Of a stretch of DNA of 64,000 bases, positions 12,301 to 51,537 are shown one piece after another. The first letter of the stretch is position 1. Each line of letters starts with the position of its first letter. A program made the position numbers and the translations under genes. The stretch is taken from positions 248,001 through 312,000 of IMG/VR virus record IMGVR_UViG_3300028840_008160; one strand, given 5' to 3'. The notes under the pieces are model-generated. The model saw nothing but the letters and a program-made list of their open reading frames with translations, did not search any database and was not told the origin of the DNA.

Positions 12301-13344
12301 TTTGTGTTCGAAAAAGTGTCAATTACAGTTATAGATTTTTTTAGGAACATTAGACAACCATCTCGACAACAGGCTAAGCAAAATCATGATGGATATATAG
12401 CAAAACAAAAAGAAACTGAGCGAGCAAAAGTTAAGCAGTCAAAAAAGATGTTGAAAGCTTTGCTAAAAAATGCGAGCATGTTTGAAAAGTTTTATCATTC
12501 ATGGGTTGAATGGTTTCATAATTCAGCTTTGTTCTATTTCTTTGGTGATGGTTCTTATCGAGGTAAAGATTTTGAAGGAATGTCAAAAGCAAAACTTGCT
12601 AATATTGTTCAATTAGTACGAGTAGCTAAAGGATATTACGATTATTACTGTATGATTGAAGCAATGGATGAAGAAATTTGTAGAGCATTACACAAAAAAT
12701 TATACAAGATATCATTTACTCATCATAATAGACTTTCTCATGTACATAGTCATATGATAGCATTAGATAGAGATTTACAAGTTAATATAGGCGCATCGCC
12801 TAACTATGCTACGCCTGTAATACAATCATATTTTAGATCACAAACATTTGATCACAAATCTGAGAAATCAATTGAAACTTTTGCATTACATTTAATGGAT
12901 GCAATGATTCATTTAAGAGCACATCGTCATGCTAGTGACGCAATGCAAAAACAGCATTCGATTACATTTCATAAAGAGAAAGTCGAGTTAAGACGGAGAG
13001 TCGTTAAGTATTTTCTCGAGAACAATATTAGACCATTAGATATTGTTAAAAGACATTTAGGCACAAATGAAGAAATAGAAGATGTATTTTACAAACTAGA
13101 TAGTGTCGAATTTTCATGTTTAGCGAAGATGACAATTAGACGTTTGAAACATGAAAAGTTAAAATATGATGTTGCACGCGAACAAATAAGGTTAGAGAAA
13201 GAGGAACAAAAAAGAAAAGCTGCTGAACGTAAGGCAGAAGAAGCTAAGGAGAAACAAGAAGAAGAGAAAAAGAAACAAGAAGAAAAAGAGGAAAAGAAGG
13301 TCGAGGAGATTGTCGCAAGGATTAACAGACTCCAAGTCATATGA
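9370..13344 (+). CDS. Large GHKL ATPase with two hydrophobic (multi-TM) regions and a charged coiled-coil tail
   Basis: IRELGQNAIDS, RDYGCGM, IGEHGIGW, GGTEV; hydrophobic stretches at about aa 430-660 and 840-990; EEKKKQEE-type tail. Confidence 0.8.
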   Translation: MMDKEKLIKREVRRCKADGGRVYTISLADLVMMQMVGDFDAFLNMIVSRTDPVAIAQVIEDTRKNVTTPRLFSGIVNKTIEAQFGNKYATIRELGQNAIDSYHLSDIQKPVRFHVCGDTSYLVLRIRDYGCGMQLKDLVKDLLIPYNSGKEFDPTKIGEHGIGWYSIVDVADLVKVTTRTQGVTCQALIYNNGEWQATIHPLSSNGFSKKFDRHDFGGTEVSAYVQSMTNNDIIHHLYQFLGTVDRSYDVVYNSHQINSVAETYRRGMPVETTINKKHKPLVMSVSKREIRGNYSDERFKHRNQNLHKVLYTQRGLFIKYDDPNFEQETIHHKLIFDMMQMGLDFWIDIPEHVGLTKGRNNIVADHTPIVLDSTYKAFENVFLDILLEDDEVLEHSSGALMASVAQIFERKYAFRVREVQKNRYSLKRRMSSLFAAALSSCIDAIRSVLTVLATMIKFAVCDLPKLLWQLGKLEVKLSKDVLVKTAFVIGILCFAGSSTWGVMLLYKSFGWAPFLYMLYFLIIEAAGCGAYYLLKSMLKYSVHCAMGLRVVFQYLGTNAIRDIIDFGRGTNVIFQTLMRNLSWDKMSDIGVMGICLIPVYIALCIVQIVWHTIKWLGLLIVKGLCSLKHPALLALRGLLIAKVYVIKWWMAGLHFIGLYIHMEEKRERKRLKYCRRISKRYLSFMHKDAFFKRIVHKKMINATTYYSEAEAARQRDDSMSSMLRTSFVETLNDVAGIFSLSDTLGQLIPTQDYTSHRYHGLSKQIQKRQVKISIDDVIQYYLEMRLKYQKDNSSLTFHHGDVFVQYKNPLIQSIIDKMEQVSVDIRNQYDVSILEDHLDNIGAVLVLFGLMFYFMTGIGFAHMILSFIFRSRVNNPFLKVKFYIKTRDFIVTSARWLFIEKKVHVRLVRYIIRGIKHCIRQIPDTLNELRKRGASALKIVVTLPFILIGKTARFMFVNVIVPVCCMLNPLRYPTYVAFVFEKVSITVIDFFRNIRQPSRQQAKQNHDGYIAKQKETERAKVKQSKKMLKALLKNASMFEKFYHSWVEWFHNSALFYFFGDGSYRGKDFEGMSKAKLANIVQLVRVAKGYYDYYCMIEAMDEEICRALHKKLYKISFTHHNRLSHVHSHMIALDRDLQVNIGASPNYATPVIQSYFRSQTFDHKSEKSIETFALHLMDAMIHLRAHRHASDAMQKQHSITFHKEKVELRRRVVKYFLENNIRPLDIVKRHLGTNEEIEDVFYKLDSVEFSCLAKMTIRRLKHEKLKYDVAREQIRLEKEEQKRKAAERKAEEAKEKQEEEKKKQEEKEEKKVEEIVARINRLQVI

Positions 13345-14088: not shown

Positions 14089-14143
14089 CTATGCCTTTAG
14101 GTTTGATTATTATTATTGTATTATGCATAAGGATATCTAATTT

Positions 14144-15154
14144 ATGACACGAGAAGAATTTAGACAGCAAGTATTCATTCGTGATAGTTATAAGTGTGTC
14201 GTGTGTCGACAATCGGCTGTTGATGCGCATCATATTATAGATCGCAGTTTGTGGTTTGATGGCGGTTATTATTTAGACAATGGTGTAAGTCTTTGCGAAC
14301 AGCATCATCTCGAAGCAGAGAAAACATTAATATCATGTGAACGTTTAAGAGTTTTGGCTAATATTGTTAATCATCTCTATCCTGAACATTTTTATCAAGA
14401 TGAGAAATATGACAAATGGGGAAACATATGTTTACCATCTGGAGCTAGAATAAAAGGCGAATTATTTAGCAATGAAAATGTGCAACAAATTTTAAGAGAC
14501 GCTGGTCAGTTAGATTCATTCTTACCATACATTAAATACCCTCGCACATATCATTTTCCATGGTCTGAGAATCTTAAAAATGATGATAGAATGCATTCTA
14601 ATGTCGATTTTTTTGAAGGCAAAGAAGTTGTTGCTACGATTAAAATGGATGGTGAAAACACGTCCATGTATAGAGATTACATTCATGCAAGATCAGTAGA
14701 TTCAAAGCATCATTTATCGAGAAGTTTAGTAAAACAAATTCATGCAACAATTGCTTTTGACATTCCAGAAGGTTGGCGAATTTGCGGCGAAAATATGTAT
14801 GCTAAGCATTCAATACATTATCATAATTTAAAAAGCTACTTTTATTTGTTTTCAATTTGGAATGAATTTAATATAGCATTAGATTGGAATTCAACATTAG
14901 ATTGGGCAAAATTGTTAGGTCTTAATGTTGTTCCCGTTTTTTACAGAGGACAATGGAATAGAGAAATAATTCATAACGCATATGAACAATTTGAATCATT
15001 TGATGAAAAAGAAGGGTATGTAGTTAGAGTAGTTGGAGAAATTTCGTATAAAGATTTTAGACATTCATTTGGCAAATTTGTACGAAAAAATCATGTACAA
15101 ACTAGTCAATTTTGGATGACGCAACCAGTAGTGCCAAATGAGGTTTTAGTATGA
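14144..15154 (+). CDS. HNH-domain / RNA ligase (Rnl2-like adenylyltransferase) fusion
   Basis: N-terminal CVVC...DAHHIIDR...NGVSLCEQHH; ligase KYPRTYH, KMDGEN, CGENMYAKHSIHY, EGYVVR, KFVR. Confidence 0.85.
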   Translation: MTREEFRQQVFIRDSYKCVVCRQSAVDAHHIIDRSLWFDGGYYLDNGVSLCEQHHLEAEKTLISCERLRVLANIVNHLYPEHFYQDEKYDKWGNICLPSGARIKGELFSNENVQQILRDAGQLDSFLPYIKYPRTYHFPWSENLKNDDRMHSNVDFFEGKEVVATIKMDGENTSMYRDYIHARSVDSKHHLSRSLVKQIHATIAFDIPEGWRICGENMYAKHSIHYHNLKSYFYLFSIWNEFNIALDWNSTLDWAKLLGLNVVPVFYRGQWNREIIHNAYEQFESFDEKEGYVVRVVGEISYKDFRHSFGKFVRKNHVQTSQFWMTQPVVPNEVLV

Positions 15155-16047
15155 GAACAATTTGGATGATAAAAGGTATTAGTAGTAGTGGTAAGTCGAC
15201 TTGGGCGCTTGAACAAATGCGAAAGTATCCAGGCCGCTATAAAAGAGTCAATCGTGATTTGTTGAGAGAGATGATTGACGGAAATGCTCTTAGTACTGAA
15301 AATGAAGCATTTTTAAAACGAATTCGAGATTTGTTTATTGAAAAAACTTTATTGCAAGAACATGACATTATTATTGATGATATGAATTTGAACAATGATA
15401 ATTGGAAAACTGTTTGTGATATTGCTTCGCTTATAGGCGATGTAAGAGTTGTTGAAAAATATTTTGAAGTATCATTAAAAGATGCATTGACGAGGAACGC
15501 ATCGAGAAGTAAGCCAGTGCCAGAACACATATTGGAAAATCAATATAAACGATATGTTAGAAATAAACATATTCAAGTGAGAGATGAATATTTTCCGCCG
15601 GTTATTGTAGATTTTACAATTGATCCAAAGAAAAAAATGGCTGCAATTGTCGATATTGATGGCACAATTGCTATGAAGTATAGTGATCGCAGTTATTTTG
15701 ATTTAGAACGTGTTGAAGAAGATACTTTAAATGAACATATATCGACACTTATTGATCTATTAGTTTTAAACGGCAACATGGACATTTTGCTTGTGTCAGG
15801 TCGAGCCGATTTTAATAAAGACAAGACTGAAGCATGGTTACAACAAACTAAACCACACTATGACAAACTTTTTATGAGACGTACTGGTGACCGTCGACCA
15901 GATTGGATTGTAAAGAAAGAAATTTACGAAGATCAAATCAAACCGCATTATAATGTGTTATATGTCATAGATGATAGGCCAATTGTTTGCAGGATGTGGC
16001 GAAACATGGGATTGACAGTTTTGCAAATCAATGATAAAGAAGTTTGA
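15151..16047 (+). CDS. pseT: T4-like polynucleotide 5'-kinase/3'-phosphatase
   Basis: P-loop GISSSGKST, RVNRD; HAD DIDGT, VSGR, DDRP. Confidence 0.9.
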   Translation: MRTIWMIKGISSSGKSTWALEQMRKYPGRYKRVNRDLLREMIDGNALSTENEAFLKRIRDLFIEKTLLQEHDIIIDDMNLNNDNWKTVCDIASLIGDVRVVEKYFEVSLKDALTRNASRSKPVPEHILENQYKRYVRNKHIQVRDEYFPPVIVDFTIDPKKKMAAIVDIDGTIAMKYSDRSYFDLERVEEDTLNEHISTLIDLLVLNGNMDILLVSGRADFNKDKTEAWLQQTKPHYDKLFMRRTGDRRPDWIVKKEIYEDQIKPHYNVLYVIDDRPIVCRMWRNMGLTVLQINDKEV

Positions 16048-21200: not shown

Positions 21201-21426
21201 TAAAGCAATATATCTCATTCAAATTGAACAGATTAGAAATGTCTCTAAAGATGTGACTCAAGATGGTATTGAGAAATATGTTGAGATGCTAAAGAATGAT
21301 AAACTAATCCAGCCGATTGTTGTCAAGAAAATTACAGAAGATTTGTATATGCTAAAAGATGGTTCCCACAGAATTTGTGCGCATTTACAATGCGGAAAAG
21401 ATTCAGTTTTAGCACATATCATATAA
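21193..21426 (+). CDS. ParB/Srx-like N-terminal domain protein
   Basis: IQPIVV...YMLKDGSHRI. Confidence 0.7.
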   Translation: MNNKAIYLIQIEQIRNVSKDVTQDGIEKYVEMLKNDKLIQPIVVKKITEDLYMLKDGSHRICAHLQCGKDSVLAHII

Positions 21427-41098: not shown

Positions 41099-41713
41099 AT
41101 GAAAGACTATCCAGCAATTTCACGAGACATTCAGTTCGGATTACCTGTTTATGCTTTTGATAAATTGGACGGGTCAAATATTCGAGCAGAGTGGACGCGT
41201 AAGCATGGGTTTAATAAATTCGGCAGTAGAAAACGATTACTTGGCACAGACCAAGAATTTTTGCCAGAAGCGATTAGGCTTGTCAAAGACAATTTTGAAG
41301 AGCAACTTGCGAAGATTTTTGTAAAACAACGATTTGACCGTGTTATGTGCTTCTTCGAATTTTATGGTGAAAACTCGTTTGCCGGAGTGCATGTCAAAGA
41401 ACCCCATCGTGTAGTCTTATTTGATGTTAATCCTTATAAGAAAGGGATAATGTTTCCTCGTGAATTTTTAAGTTTGTTTGGGCATCTCGACATTCCTCGA
41501 TTATTACATCAAGGTAATTGCACTCATCCATTCGTAGATAGTGTCAAAAATAATTCACTTGAAGGACTGACAAGTGAAGGTGTTGTTTGTAAAGCACCGG
41601 GTAAAGGAAAAATGTCATTGCCTATAATGTTCAAAGTTAAGACAGAACAGTGGATCACTAAACTCAAAACATATTGCGGTGATGATGAAAGATTGTTTAG
41701 AGAACTGTTATGA
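41099..41713 (+). CDS. Second, compact RNA ligase-like adenylyltransferase
   Basis: DKLDGSNIR, FEFYG, VLFDV, EGVVCK, FKVKT. Confidence 0.8.
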   Translation: MKDYPAISRDIQFGLPVYAFDKLDGSNIRAEWTRKHGFNKFGSRKRLLGTDQEFLPEAIRLVKDNFEEQLAKIFVKQRFDRVMCFFEFYGENSFAGVHVKEPHRVVLFDVNPYKKGIMFPREFLSLFGHLDIPRLLHQGNCTHPFVDSVKNNSLEGLTSEGVVCKAPGKGKMSLPIMFKVKTEQWITKLKTYCGDDERLFRELL

Positions 41714-47463: not shown

Positions 47464-47782
47464 TCTACGTTTTTAGATATGACTACTCTAACATGTCTGT
47501 TGTACCTAATTACATTGAATTCACTAATGAAGAGCTTGTTGATTTAAGTTATCGACTTCAAAATTCAAATTCAATTCATGCTAAACAACTTGCCAAAAAG
47601 ATTGATCGTTCGATAGGTCAATTTACTACGACAAATCTCCTTGGTTCACTAAATTCTTCATTTGAAGATCGTATTTGTAAAGATTTGATTTTTTTCATGT
47701 CGATAAACGACGTGGCAAAAATTGATGATAAAGAACCGTTTAAAACAATAGCATTGTGGAGATTACATTTAGGGAGACAACG

Positions 47783-48426: not shown

Positions 48427-48428
48427 TT

Positions 48429-49037
48429 ATGCCAGTAGTAACAGTTGATAAAGTTCGTTTTGTCGTACACTGGAAGTCTGAATGGATCGAAATACTAAGA
48501 TATATTGATGAGAATTTTAAGACACTTTCGGGTAATATTGATTGGAAAGCTGCTGAAAAAGTTGGTTTACTTTCTGGCTTTCCAAATGTGTCACTTAAAT
48601 ATATAAGTAGATATTGGTCGACGAAGAAAAGAAAAAGAGATAGAGTTCAACAATCATGTCGATCTGATAACACGCAGCGATTAAGTGTTCTACATAAAAA
48701 TGGAATTCCTAAACGTATACGTTTTCTATGGACAAGACAACAGCAAATTGTTCTTGATCGACTTGTGCGTCGACATAAAAGAAAGTCTGTTGTAGATTGG
48801 AAAGGCGTTTGGAACGATCCTCAAAGAAAAAAACTACCGACTCATTACACATTAGTTTCTTTACGTAAGTATTGGAACAGCACAAATCACATCGATTCAG
48901 ATTTGAACATTAAATCTTCTTTGGCTTGGCGTAAAGCAAATCCAGAACGATATCGACAGCATCAATTGAAAATTGCTCGACGTAGAAAGAATGAGAAAAA
49001 TGCGTTTCTGTATTCTCGAATGGAATATCGTCGTTAG
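48429..49037 (+). CDS. Tandem Myb/SANT-like DNA-binding protein
   Basis: Two repeats, each with three spaced Trp: WKSEWIEIL..IDWK..YISRYW and WTRQQQIVL..VDWK..SLRKYW; basic tail WRKANPERY. Confidence 0.5.
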   Translation: MPVVTVDKVRFVVHWKSEWIEILRYIDENFKTLSGNIDWKAAEKVGLLSGFPNVSLKYISRYWSTKKRKRDRVQQSCRSDNTQRLSVLHKNGIPKRIRFLWTRQQQIVLDRLVRRHKRKSVVDWKGVWNDPQRKKLPTHYTLVSLRKYWNSTNHIDSDLNIKSSLAWRKANPERYRQHQLKIARRRKNEKNAFLYSRMEYRR

Positions 49038-49041
49038 GCGA

Positions 49042-49178
49042 TTTCGCCATTGAGAAGCTTTATTTTCGTGCACTGAGAAGGTATTACTTCTTTTCGCCAC
49101 TGAGAAGCCTTATTTTCGCCTCTGAGAAGGTATTACTTCTTTTCGCCACTGAGAAGCCTTATTTTCGCCTCTGAGAAG
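49042..49178 (+). repeat. Six direct repeats of TTTCGCC(A/T)(C/T)TGAGAAG with alternating 22/27-bp periodicity
   Basis: Cores end at 49057, 49080, 49107, 49129, 49156, 49178; an exact 49-bp unit occurs twice (49081-49129, 49130-49178). Confidence 0.95.
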
Positions 49179-49328
49179 TCAATTAAAATACTAACCCTTC
49201 ACAATTAATTTATAATACGTTTAATATCAATAAGTTAGAAGCATTAATAGGATCATTTTGATGGGTTTTGGGCATGACTACAATAATAGGAAGCGTAGGT
49301 AATGCCACTTAACCAAACGGAGGTTAGC

Positions 49329-51482
49329 ATGAAGCTAACGAGTGCAATATGGATGGTCATCATTTTGATGACGGCGAGCGTAAGCTGGGCAGTCGACACC
49401 CAGAAATCAAAGTCGACGAACTATCCTCTATCTACCACACTCGAAACTGCCGATTCGAGTTGGGTGCTTCAACTCATACAAAATGAGTTGTATTGGGGAG
49501 TTCAGGAACTTGAATCTGGTGATTTTGTTGTCACAGCTACTAACGCAACGGTTGGTGGTTCATGGACGAAAGAATCATCATGGAATGGCAACACAGCACC
49601 AGAAGATTTTTTCAATGAATTATCAGCCGGTGTAAAAGAGGTTCGGTTTCTTCCGGTGGGCACCGATTCTGTTGTACTTGTCATTTCAGGTCCAGACAGC
49701 ACATACCTTTATAGACGTTATGCGACATATCAATCGGCACCGTACATCTGGACAAGAACTGCACTGAATGCAGTTTTTGACTCGCTTCAATATACTACAA
49801 TTCAAGGCGATACTATCATCCGGAATTATCCTAATGCTATAAGCGTTGATGTTCCCGGAATGACAATTATCAGCCGAAGTTTTGGAGTTGATATTTTTGG
49901 CAACGAATATTTTGTCGGCGAAATTGCTGGCAAAAAAGTATTTGCTAAAAATGAAGTTAGCTCAGGCAAGGTAATTTATTGGGAGTACGGAATCGACGTG
50001 CTTCCGATTTTTGATCCAACAAACATCTCTTATTTGATCGCTGGCCGCGGCGGAGTCGATAGCATCTACATCAATCATCCTGTGTATGTTGTCGAAGATA
50101 CCATTTATGTATCAGCATTGGCTGATACTCTTTTAAATGGCGATGACATTGTCAGGATTTATCATCCCATTACGATCATAGACGACAATCAAACAATTCA
50201 TCAGTCAGTGCCTATTGTTCCTGTCTTTTCAGATTGGATACGTTATTCTGGCGACACTACATATTTAGAAATCTCAGCTTCACCGGTAACAATTGGTGCA
50301 ACTTATCCTCTTCGATATCGAATCATCGATCGTTCCTCAAGCAATGACACTAGCCCATGGTTAATGGAAGATACGGTTTGCATGATGATCAAAGTCGTTA
50401 ATGATTCAATGAAGGTCACAGATATTGTCGACCAACAGGCCACTGAAAGTCAATCATTTTCGGTAAATGTAGTAGTATCAAATGGAATGTGGCCAGCTGT
50501 CGAATCTTTCACTGGACCAAGCTGGTTGACGATCAACAACTTCACAATTTCTGGAACGCCGACACATTCAGATGTTGGAGGAGAAGTTGTAGTCGCGATC
50601 TTAGACACAATGATTCAATATCGAGGCATTACTCATACTCAAGTTACTCAACGAGATACAGTTCGTTTCAACATTACTGTTGAATACCTGCCCAATGCAA
50701 TTCCGACCATATCAGTTACACAATCAGCTGATACCATTTATATAGATGAATCGTTAGCTTGCACAACACATGTTGCTGATGCTGATGGCGATCAGCTTAT
50801 TACAACTTATGGAATTGTTGCAAATGCTTCATTTACACAAAATAATGATTCATTATATATAGTAACATTTGGAACAACGGGTTCATACGCACTTATATTC
50901 AAAGTGAATGATGGAGAAGATTCGGCATCTGCGCAGATTGATATTGAAGTTATTGACAGACCAACTGTTAATATACCACCAGTTGTTGCTAACGACACTG
51001 TTAGAACGAAACTTGGCGACGGTGATTGGATTCGTAAAGTGATTCAAGCAACTGACGATGACAATGATCAATTGATGTATGATTTTGGTAACGGTTTTAC
51101 ATTGGATTCGACGTACGTATATGAAGTCATTGAGGCTGATACTTTTGATGTCGAAGTCAAAGTTACAGACGGTACAGACACCGTTACATGCATTTTGACT
51201 GTGATGATAGAAGATGTTCCAACAACTACAATAACAAATCTCAATCGCGTGCCTGCAAATGATTTTGCTAAATTACAAGGCTCACGCATTGATTATGGAA
51301 TCAAGTCAGCTGGGCAAATCAAAATTGTAGCAATTACTTTAGATGGTCGCATTGTTGCCAAAGTGAATGCTTACAAATCTGCCGGTTCATACTTTCTTGA
51401 CATTAATTCTTCGACACCGGTAATTGTTCAAGTGATTGTCGGTTCCATTCGTCAAATGATGAAGATCACAACGATCAAATAA
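49329..51482 (+). CDS. Exported Ig/cadherin-like repeat protein with a T9SS-like C-terminal sorting domain
   Basis: GGAGG SD; signal peptide MKLTSAIWMVIILMTASVSWA; PSWLTI, DADGDQL, VSDG-type Ig motifs; C-terminal IDYGI...GQIKIVAITLDGRIVA...AGSY; visibly more GC-rich than the flanks. Confidence 0.65.
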   Translation: MKLTSAIWMVIILMTASVSWAVDTQKSKSTNYPLSTTLETADSSWVLQLIQNELYWGVQELESGDFVVTATNATVGGSWTKESSWNGNTAPEDFFNELSAGVKEVRFLPVGTDSVVLVISGPDSTYLYRRYATYQSAPYIWTRTALNAVFDSLQYTTIQGDTIIRNYPNAISVDVPGMTIISRSFGVDIFGNEYFVGEIAGKKVFAKNEVSSGKVIYWEYGIDVLPIFDPTNISYLIAGRGGVDSIYINHPVYVVEDTIYVSALADTLLNGDDIVRIYHPITIIDDNQTIHQSVPIVPVFSDWIRYSGDTTYLEISASPVTIGATYPLRYRIIDRSSSNDTSPWLMEDTVCMMIKVVNDSMKVTDIVDQQATESQSFSVNVVVSNGMWPAVESFTGPSWLTINNFTISGTPTHSDVGGEVVVAILDTMIQYRGITHTQVTQRDTVRFNITVEYLPNAIPTISVTQSADTIYIDESLACTTHVADADGDQLITTYGIVANASFTQNNDSLYIVTFGTTGSYALIFKVNDGEDSASAQIDIEVIDRPTVNIPPVVANDTVRTKLGDGDWIRKVIQATDDDNDQLMYDFGNGFTLDSTYVYEVIEADTFDVEVKVTDGTDTVTCILTVMIEDVPTTTITNLNRVPANDFAKLQGSRIDYGIKSAGQIKIVAITLDGRIVAKVNAYKSAGSYFLDINSSTPVIVQVIVGSIRQMMKITTIK

Positions 51483-51509: not shown

Positions 51510-51537
51510 GGGTGAGCTTTTTGCTCACCCTTTTTTT
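51510..51537 (+). terminator. Intrinsic terminator
   Basis: GGGTGAGC-ttttt-GCTCACCC then T7. Confidence 0.85.

Follow-up and report, generated by a model that had tools for sequence, protein, structure and literature searches.

Iteron plasmids and lambda-type origins of replication carry direct repeats of a period comparable to that described here, and in sopB-sopC of plasmid F and in parB-parS, tandem repeats or sites are found beside the gene of a DNA-binding protein. In eukaryotes, the Myb-type factors Reb1 and TTF-I bind repeated terminator boxes. To our knowledge, almost nothing has been established about the replication origins of uncultured huge phages or about their regulatory circuits, so that a conserved and unique repeat array in such a genome is a usable experimental handle.

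In the locus analyzed here, six direct repeats directly follow the gene of a Myb-like protein, P0001. Arrays of phage operators or activating sites resemble it in their direct repeats, which measure about 16 bp and are spaced by helical turns, in their position at an operon boundary upstream of promoter-like blocks, and in the conservation of the array together with the putative regulated gene. Unlike most phage operators, which have fewer sites, this array has six candidate sites over 137 bp, and these are asymmetric direct repeats and not palindromes. Iteron origins (lambda ori, P1 oriR/incA, R6K, RK2, and F oriS) likewise have direct repeats of about 22 bp, and in this phage the gene of a predicted DNA-binding protein and AT-rich DNA lie beside the array. 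In contrast to such origins, conservation does not extend to the AT element, and the related phage locus L239, which keeps the array, lacks the candidate initiator; DnaA boxes, a skew signal, and a winged-helix Rep fold are likewise missing here. The order of sopB-sopC and parB-parS, in which a DNA-binding-protein gene is followed by a tandem-repeat array, is also seen here, but there is neither a partition NTPase nor a ParB fold, and the linkage of gene and array is not conserved. Like the Myb/SANT proteins (TRF1, Reb1/TTF-I, and the Myb-type helix-turn-helix proteins of jumbo phages), P0001 is predicted to contain a three-helix domain with three spaced Trp or aromatic residues, present in two tandem copies (superposition Z scores of 4.5–5.8), and is very basic. 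It differs from them in the lack of a significant Pfam Myb or NCBIfam match, in the longer spacing of the Trp residues (23–25 residues), and in an extra N-terminal β-hairpin and C-terminal helical hairpin.

The repeat array and its setting

The window, which is the whole stretch of 64,000 nucleotides that was analyzed, comprises positions 248001–312000 of a 329.8-kb IMG/VR virus record. The record derives from an uncultured huge phage. It has a CheckV completeness of 67% and a GC content of about 35%, and it is labeled as a provirus in IMG/VR. The + strand bears 354 of the 392 crude ORF calls, and the GC skew is above zero in every 5-kb bin. The array is distant from a region rich in tRNA genes and from the gene of a DnaB-like helicase, which is at record position 137.8 kb. 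For most of the window proteins, Pfam and PHROG searches gave no family match. The features of the locus in window coordinates are as follows.

47465–47485, + strand: candidate promoter of the operon that closes with the Myb-like gene, CTACG-N8-TATGACTA, directly before a 97-aa ORF; kept in L239
48010–48426, + strand: gene of 138 aa (p138), 69% identical in L239 by tblastn; left edge of a variable slot
48429–49037, + strand: ORF of P0001, 202 aa, very basic (pI 10.9); single copy in the record
48468–48635, + strand: repeat 1 of P0001, residues 14–69 with Trp 15, 39, and 63, placed by hhalign against repeat 2 and by the model
48726–48893, + strand: repeat 2 of P0001, residues 100–155 with Trp 101, 124, and 149; predicted three-helix Myb/SANT-like fold (VIA-align)
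49042–49178, + strand: direct-repeat array, three 49-bp double units with six cores
49179–49253, no strand: AT-rich spacer, with 22% GC over 49179–49260; 51% identical to L239
49254–49280, + strand: conserved blocks CATTTTGATGGG (49254–49265) and CATGACTA (49273–49280), identical in L239; presumably a promoter or other control sequence of the gene behind them
49329–51482, + strand: downstream gene, 717 aa, predicted to be secreted; it has a signal peptide and matches PKD weakly

That p138 might be an MGMT-like helix-turn-helix protein was supported neither by a PDB sequence search nor by an Atlas search.

The stop codon TAG of the P0001 gene (49035–49037) is followed by the four bases GCGA and then by the first core, so that the array starts 5 nt past the stop codon, as the preliminary description had noted. 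The six cores and their spacing of 23/27/22/27/22, measured at the 3′ ends, were likewise found as described there. The cores start at positions 49042, 49064, 49092, 49114, 49141, and 49163. Five are exact copies of the 16-mer TTTCGCCWYTGAGAAG, whereas the site at 49064–49080 is a degenerate 17-nt variant, TTTCGTGCACTGAGAAG, with an intact spacer. In shuffles of the window TTTCGCCWYTGAGAAG matched 0.08 times on average and never five times. Tandem Repeats Finder reports a 49-bp unit in 2.8 copies with a 94% match, and units 2 and 3, the last two, are 100% identical. Two types of core alternate: A-type cores are preceded by CTTCT and have AC or AT at the center, and B-type cores are preceded by CTTAT and have TC at the center. 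The six cores thus form three A+B pairs, the two cores of a pair being 22 bp apart and each pair following the previous one at 49 bp, and all copies are oriented along the direction of transcription.

The search of the whole record for further cores that the preliminary description had called for was performed, and on either strand of the 329.8 kb no copy with up to two mismatches was found outside the array. Weaker matches in the record need three or four mismatches, are nearly all situated in coding sequence, and fit chance. There are also no core copies near the promoter of the operon that holds the P0001 gene. In IMG/VR and metagenome contigs the core 16-mer gave single matches per contig and no arrays, and these matches were taken as chance. 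A Logan contig from the same phage population (SRR6963591_80404, L007) has its 3′ end inside the array, in the third core, most likely because the repeat interrupted the assembly.

Three other classes of repeat were considered and rejected. On inspection, repeats of 16 nt with spacers of 6–11 nt do not match the geometry expected of a CRISPR-like array. A coding repeat is excluded by the 49-bp period, which is not a multiple of 3, and by the stop codons present, and a transposon end by the absence of an inverted core copy from the whole record.

The AT-rich tract that had been described behind the array is present. Its GC content over 49179–49260 is within the lowest 0.8% of 82-nt windows, but the record contains about 151 separate tracts that are just as AT-rich, and the tract is therefore ordinary for this genome. 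The tract that matches it in L239 has 36% GC compared with a locus mean of 38%.

Sequence, family, and predicted fold of P0001

The two repeats of P0001, each with three Trp residues as the preliminary description had pointed out, align by hhalign (residues 14–69 against 100–155) with a probability of 97.4% and an E-value of 1.5e-11. They are therefore homologous and represent a tandem duplication of about 55 residues. The protein has a net charge of approximately +31.

An exhaustive HMMER search of 1.84 billion representative proteins yielded 28 relatives of P0001, the best of which is 47% identical. The relatives are about 200–300 aa long, most of them 200–240 aa, and with the exception of one weak outlier (P0021), the pI within the family is 10.0–11.6. 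The family alignment reveals a conserved N terminus, MPxV...RWxPEWD, and two W...W...W/Y blocks; among 26 family members, Trp-39, Trp-101, and Trp-124 are invariant and Trp-15 is nearly so. Word-based searches with P0001, and also with its profile, returned only P0001 itself, and tblastn against GenBank phages gave no match. A search of viral contigs for relatives gave nothing usable with P0001 or the AAA ATPase, with the P0001 family alignment, which is too little conserved, or with alignments of the 726-aa protein and the peptidase.

Sequence models do not support membership of P0001 in the Myb/SANT family. Pfam gave no match at E ≤ 1, and PHROGs and NCBIfam, including the RsfA model, gave nothing relevant. 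The model Myb_DNA-bind_6 is touched by 3 of 26 relatives at an E-value of 0.025, which is below the cut-off, and a PDB profile search returned only 2cqr, a DnaJC1 chain, at an E-value of 0.68.

Using a 26-sequence alignment, AlphaFold2 gave a model of P0001 with a pLDDT of 88; the model from the single sequence (pLDDT 43) was useless. The predicted layout consists of a β-hairpin, a first Myb-like domain, a basic linker, a second domain, and a long C-terminal helical hairpin, and the helices of repeat 1 comprise residues 17–29, 39–44, and 56–68. When residues 97–155 were compared with known structures by VIA-align, they superposed as whole domains on the DNA-binding domains of TRF1, ARR1, LUX, MTA1-SANT, c-Myb R1, Reb1, and GcrA, with Z scores of 4.5–5.8 and root mean square deviations of about 2–3 Å. 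For 1w0t_B, the Z score is 5.7 and the deviation 2.2 Å with 52 of 52 residues aligned, and the Reb1-Ter complex 5eyb_B matches with a Z score of 4.9. Among the top 50 rows, almost all are Myb, SANT, or homeodomain-like, with Z scores of 4.1–5.8 that are modest for a domain of this size. Foldseek against PDB and BFVD found nothing significant for P0001, and the weak Foldseek and Atlas matches fall into the same Myb/SANT class. The model, the superpositions, and these same-class matches together support a Myb/SANT-like fold for the predicted domains, the assignment of domain 1 resting on its homology to domain 2, which is the one covered by the superposition. The Myb/SANT-like character proposed earlier from the letters of the sequence is thus upheld at the level of the predicted fold.

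P0001 belongs to a family that is rare and lacks annotation; its members are very basic and are predicted to contain two helix-turn-helix domains of the Myb/SANT-like type. Sequence-specific DNA binding is predicted, with indirect support from the pI of 10–11.6 across the family. The family is small and scattered through unrelated phage contexts and could be added to domain databases. The preliminary description regarded Myb domains as mainly eukaryotic and the fold as unusual; such domains are indeed uncommon in phages, but the oddity was overstated, because Myb-type helix-turn-helix transcription factors have been reported in jumbo phages, e.g. Bacillus phage G (PMC7824862). A Myb fold in a phage is therefore uncommon but not unprecedented.

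Gene and array in related phages

The AAA ATPase encoded beside the array has homologues in other huge-phage contigs, the closest of which, at 70% identity, is that of L239, a locus on a 107.8-kb contig (run SRR22808017) of which 21.6 kb was covered by the comparison. L239 is collinear with the window over p130, AAA, p97, p85, p138, the orthologue of the 726-aa protein, and a C1 peptidase. The tblastn identities are 61% for p130, 70% for the AAA ATPase, 56% for p97, 64% for p85, 69% for p138, 61% for the 726-aa protein, and 83% for the C1 peptidase. L239 is the only syntenic relative found; L240, which came from the AAA alignment, is distant and non-syntenic, and L241 shares only the AAA gene.

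No match to P0001 is present in the 21.6 kb of L239 compared. Its place in L239, where p138 and the 713-aa gene flank the slot, is taken by two small, unrelated, acidic ORFs of 60 and 53 aa. The variable slot extends from p138 to the array (window 48427–49041, L239 12623–13002), and on its right side the replacement reaches up to the first array core or cuts into it. The array itself is retained. In L239 it occupies positions 13003–13090, its first base lying 3 nt past the last stop codon, and it consists of four cores, CTCGCCACTGAGAAG, TTTCGCCGCTGAGCTA, TTTCGCCATTGAGAGG, and TTTCGCCTCTCAGAGA, spaced 22/28/22. The same alternation of A (CTTCT-preceded) and B (CTTAT-preceded) cores is observed, with CCTTAT and TCTTAT spacers.

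The opposite situation is found in ten contigs that encode relatives of P0001, seven of which were compared as DNA and three as gene tables. In all ten the next gene starts 0–61 nt past the stop codon of the relative, or an ORF fills the gap, and none of the seven contigs with DNA has a direct-repeat array near the gene. These contigs share only this gene with the window, and its neighbors there include a tyrosine integrase, an AcrVA2-like gene, and a weak GIY-YIG match.

The preliminary description had interpreted gene and array as a cognate pair, a view that was to be given up if the array proved absent or unlinked in relatives. Gene and array are uncoupled in both directions, the array being missing behind the gene in the ten contigs with P0001 relatives and present without the gene in L239. 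The array is most likely not a dedicated partner of the P0001 gene, judged from these comparisons, and the gene looks like an accessory insertion in a variable slot that ends the upstream operon. Because L239 keeps the array without the gene, the array is reassigned to the putative control region of the downstream gene. A single syntenic relative sufficed for this uncoupling, and the position of a DNA-binding gene next to a repeat array was no evidence of a cognate pair here.

Over the array, 72 of 86 aligned nucleotides are identical to L239 (84%), a value slightly inflated by the choice of register that a repeat alignment leaves. By comparison, third codon positions in six flanking genes are 46–59% identical, and three control intergenic regions are 65–66% identical. 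The conservation corresponds to a binomial p of 2e-8 against p0 = 0.55, with a single comparison behind it since one syntenic relative was found. Given the lower identity of third positions and other spacers, the array looks like a real, selected cis element. Part of it is evolutionarily young, because units 2 and 3 are identical and the copy number differs between the two phages (three against two); the sequence of the third 49-bp unit clearly marks it as a recent duplication.

The presumed control region before the downstream gene and possible functions of the array

The gene behind the array is listed from an ORF start at 49302, which gives 726 aa, and its likely start is the ATG at 49329 behind GGAGG (49319–49323). 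Its orthologue in L239 encodes 713 aa (tblastn identity, 61%). The conserved block CATGACTA in front of it is enriched in the intergenic DNA of the record and is part of a bipartite 21-nt motif, CTA[CT][GA]-N8-[CTA][AT]TGA[CT]TA, of which the + strand has 15 copies and the − strand 3, compared with 4.3 in shuffles. Eleven copies are intergenic, and they end 8 to ~220 nt before gene starts on the + strand. Copies start at window positions 14089, 16051, 29433, 41071, 47465, 54541, and 62647, and eight lie elsewhere in the record. The motif is a candidate phage-specific promoter; matches to sigma-70-like promoters are at chance level. The copy at 47465 precedes the p97-p85-p138-Myb operon, is conserved in L239, and is presumed to be the promoter of this operon. 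With copies of the motif or conserved blocks on either side, the array is situated between two co-oriented transcription units. There is no intrinsic terminator between the P0001 gene and the next promoter-like block. A canonical one is present after the 726-aa gene at window ~51510–51537, composed of GGGTGAGC-TTTTT-GCTCACCC and a T run, and it is kept in L239.

Two further repeats were observed in such regions. At G000:C1:326528-326591, outside the window, a perfect tandem repeat of 21 bp × 2, TTTGTCACTTGGCCCCCTTCC, abuts CTACG-N8-CATGACTA and is a second case of direct repeats before the bipartite motif. The 10-mer CATTTTGATG occurs twice, 105–107 nt apart, at window 49254–49263 and 49361–49370 and at L239 13169–13178 and 13274–13283, with one copy in the upstream control region and the other within the codons for the signal peptide of the downstream protein.

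We tentatively favor the explanation that the array is a conserved cis element that belongs to the region controlling the downstream gene and not a dedicated partner of the P0001 gene. The six 16-bp cores would be tandem candidate sites for a sequence-specific DNA-binding protein of the phage or its host. Bound at the boundary of the two co-oriented units, such a protein could activate or repress the promoter-like blocks CATTTTGATGGG and CATGACTA, which lie 76–95 nt beyond the array, and it could also act as an insulator that limits read-through from the terminator-less upstream operon. Both the binding of a protein to the array and its role in transcription are inferred. In the one relative compared, the array is conserved together with the downstream gene and above the level of neutral DNA. 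This argument is weakened by the fact that the iterons of an origin would likewise be conserved between relatives. The earlier suggestion of an operator holds in a weakened form, insofar as the array appears to be a conserved cis element; an autoregulatory operator of the P0001 gene is unlikely, because the array is downstream of this gene and not at its promoter.

Alternatively, P0001 itself could bind the six cores, with one helix-turn-helix domain per half-site, and act locally, either regulating the downstream promoter from an operator or terminating transcription as a roadblock where its own operon ends; it would then resemble Reb1 and TTF-I. We consider this unlikely. The array starts right behind the P0001 stop codon, and proximity alone makes P0001 a candidate binder, an assignment to which we give equally little weight. 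Two homologous helix-turn-helix domains, the strongly positive charge (about +31), and the long C-terminal hairpin of helices, through which the protein could oligomerize, are consistent with the proposal, as are the structural match to Reb1-Ter and the missing terminator ahead of the next promoter-like block. Against it, L239 conserves the array in the absence of the gene, neither an array nor room for one is found in any of the ten contigs with relatives, and core copies are absent from the promoter of the P0001 operon and from the rest of the record.

It is distinctly unlikely that the array is an origin or genome-maintenance site of a clade of uncultured huge phages, or that this phage has recruited its Myb-like protein as a roadblock of the Reb1/TTF-I kind, which insulates the two units by binding to repeats that existed before. 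If either were true, this would be a prokaryotic-virus counterpart of the eukaryotic Myb-type proteins that bind repeat arrays.

As an iteron-type origin of a huge-phage lineage, more specifically, the array would have an initiator bound to the repeats and DNA unwinding in the adjoining AT-rich tract. The six direct repeats with their 22-bp sub-period exceed the minimum of three repeats, of about 17–22 bp each, expected of such an origin, a tract of 22% GC adjoins them, and the array is conserved in a relative and unique in the record. We nonetheless regard this origin as improbable. There is no conserved unwinding element, since the corresponding tract of L239 has near-average GC and is 51% identical, and equally AT-rich tracts are frequent in the record. 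There is no DnaA box within 49000–49400, the DnaB-like helicase is 159 kb away, the neighboring genes are not replication genes, and the candidate initiator is missing from L239. The skew profile suggested earlier as a check was run on the whole record of 330 kb; the skew is positive throughout and does not inflect at 297 kb, a finding of little weight given that the genes are co-oriented. The proposal of a replication origin thus gained nothing from the analysis.

An element acting at the RNA level is equally improbable. On read-through, the array would be contained in about 290 nt of untranslated mRNA and could form a platform for RNA-binding proteins or a processing signal. That all copies point along transcription, that no terminator separates the two units, and that the next intrinsic terminator, after the 726-aa gene, is conserved in L239 would fit such a role. 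The predicted folds do not: with z-scores of +0.38, −0.46, and −0.30, neither strand is more stable than shuffled sequences, and Rfam gave no family match.

We think it quite improbable that the array is a functionless tandem duplication, i.e. a slippage minisatellite in a spacer. The identity of units 2 and 3, the different copy number in the two phages, the degenerate core at 49064 with its intact spacer, and the Logan contig that breaks inside the array are what slippage would produce, but the array is better conserved than silent sites and other spacers, and both the A/B alternation and the 22/27–28 spacing are preserved in L239.

A partition (centromere-like) or pac site bound by a dedicated protein is highly improbable: tandem repeats directly after the gene of a DNA-binding protein recall sopB-sopC and parB-parS, and the record bears the provirus label, but there is no ParA-, ParM-, or TubZ-type gene nearby, the neighbors being a classical AAA protein (PF00004), which is the only NTPase, and proteins of unknown function, the linkage of array and protein is broken in relatives, a terminase (PF03237) was not detected near the array or record-wide, and the only ParB_N-like match is sub-threshold and 28 kb distant. 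Without a ParA-type gene adjoining the array, the partition site proposed in the preliminary description also gained no support. The ParB_N-like match concerns a 100-aa ORF at window 21241–21423 and scores 24.1 bits against a cut-off of 26.3.

Several other features of the record were observed. An RNA ligase with an HNH-like N terminus adjoins a polynucleotide kinase at window 14144–16047, which suggests an RNA-repair pair, and a further gene of the RNA-ligase family is situated at window 41099–41713. Outside the window, a perfect tandem duplication of 54 bp × 2 is found at the 3′ end of an ORF (G000:C1:7677-7785). Near the start of the record (G000:C1:1290-1450), several alternating CGCGCG/GCGTGCGCGCG tracts occur within a 350-nt intergenic region, unlike the remaining AT-rich genome.
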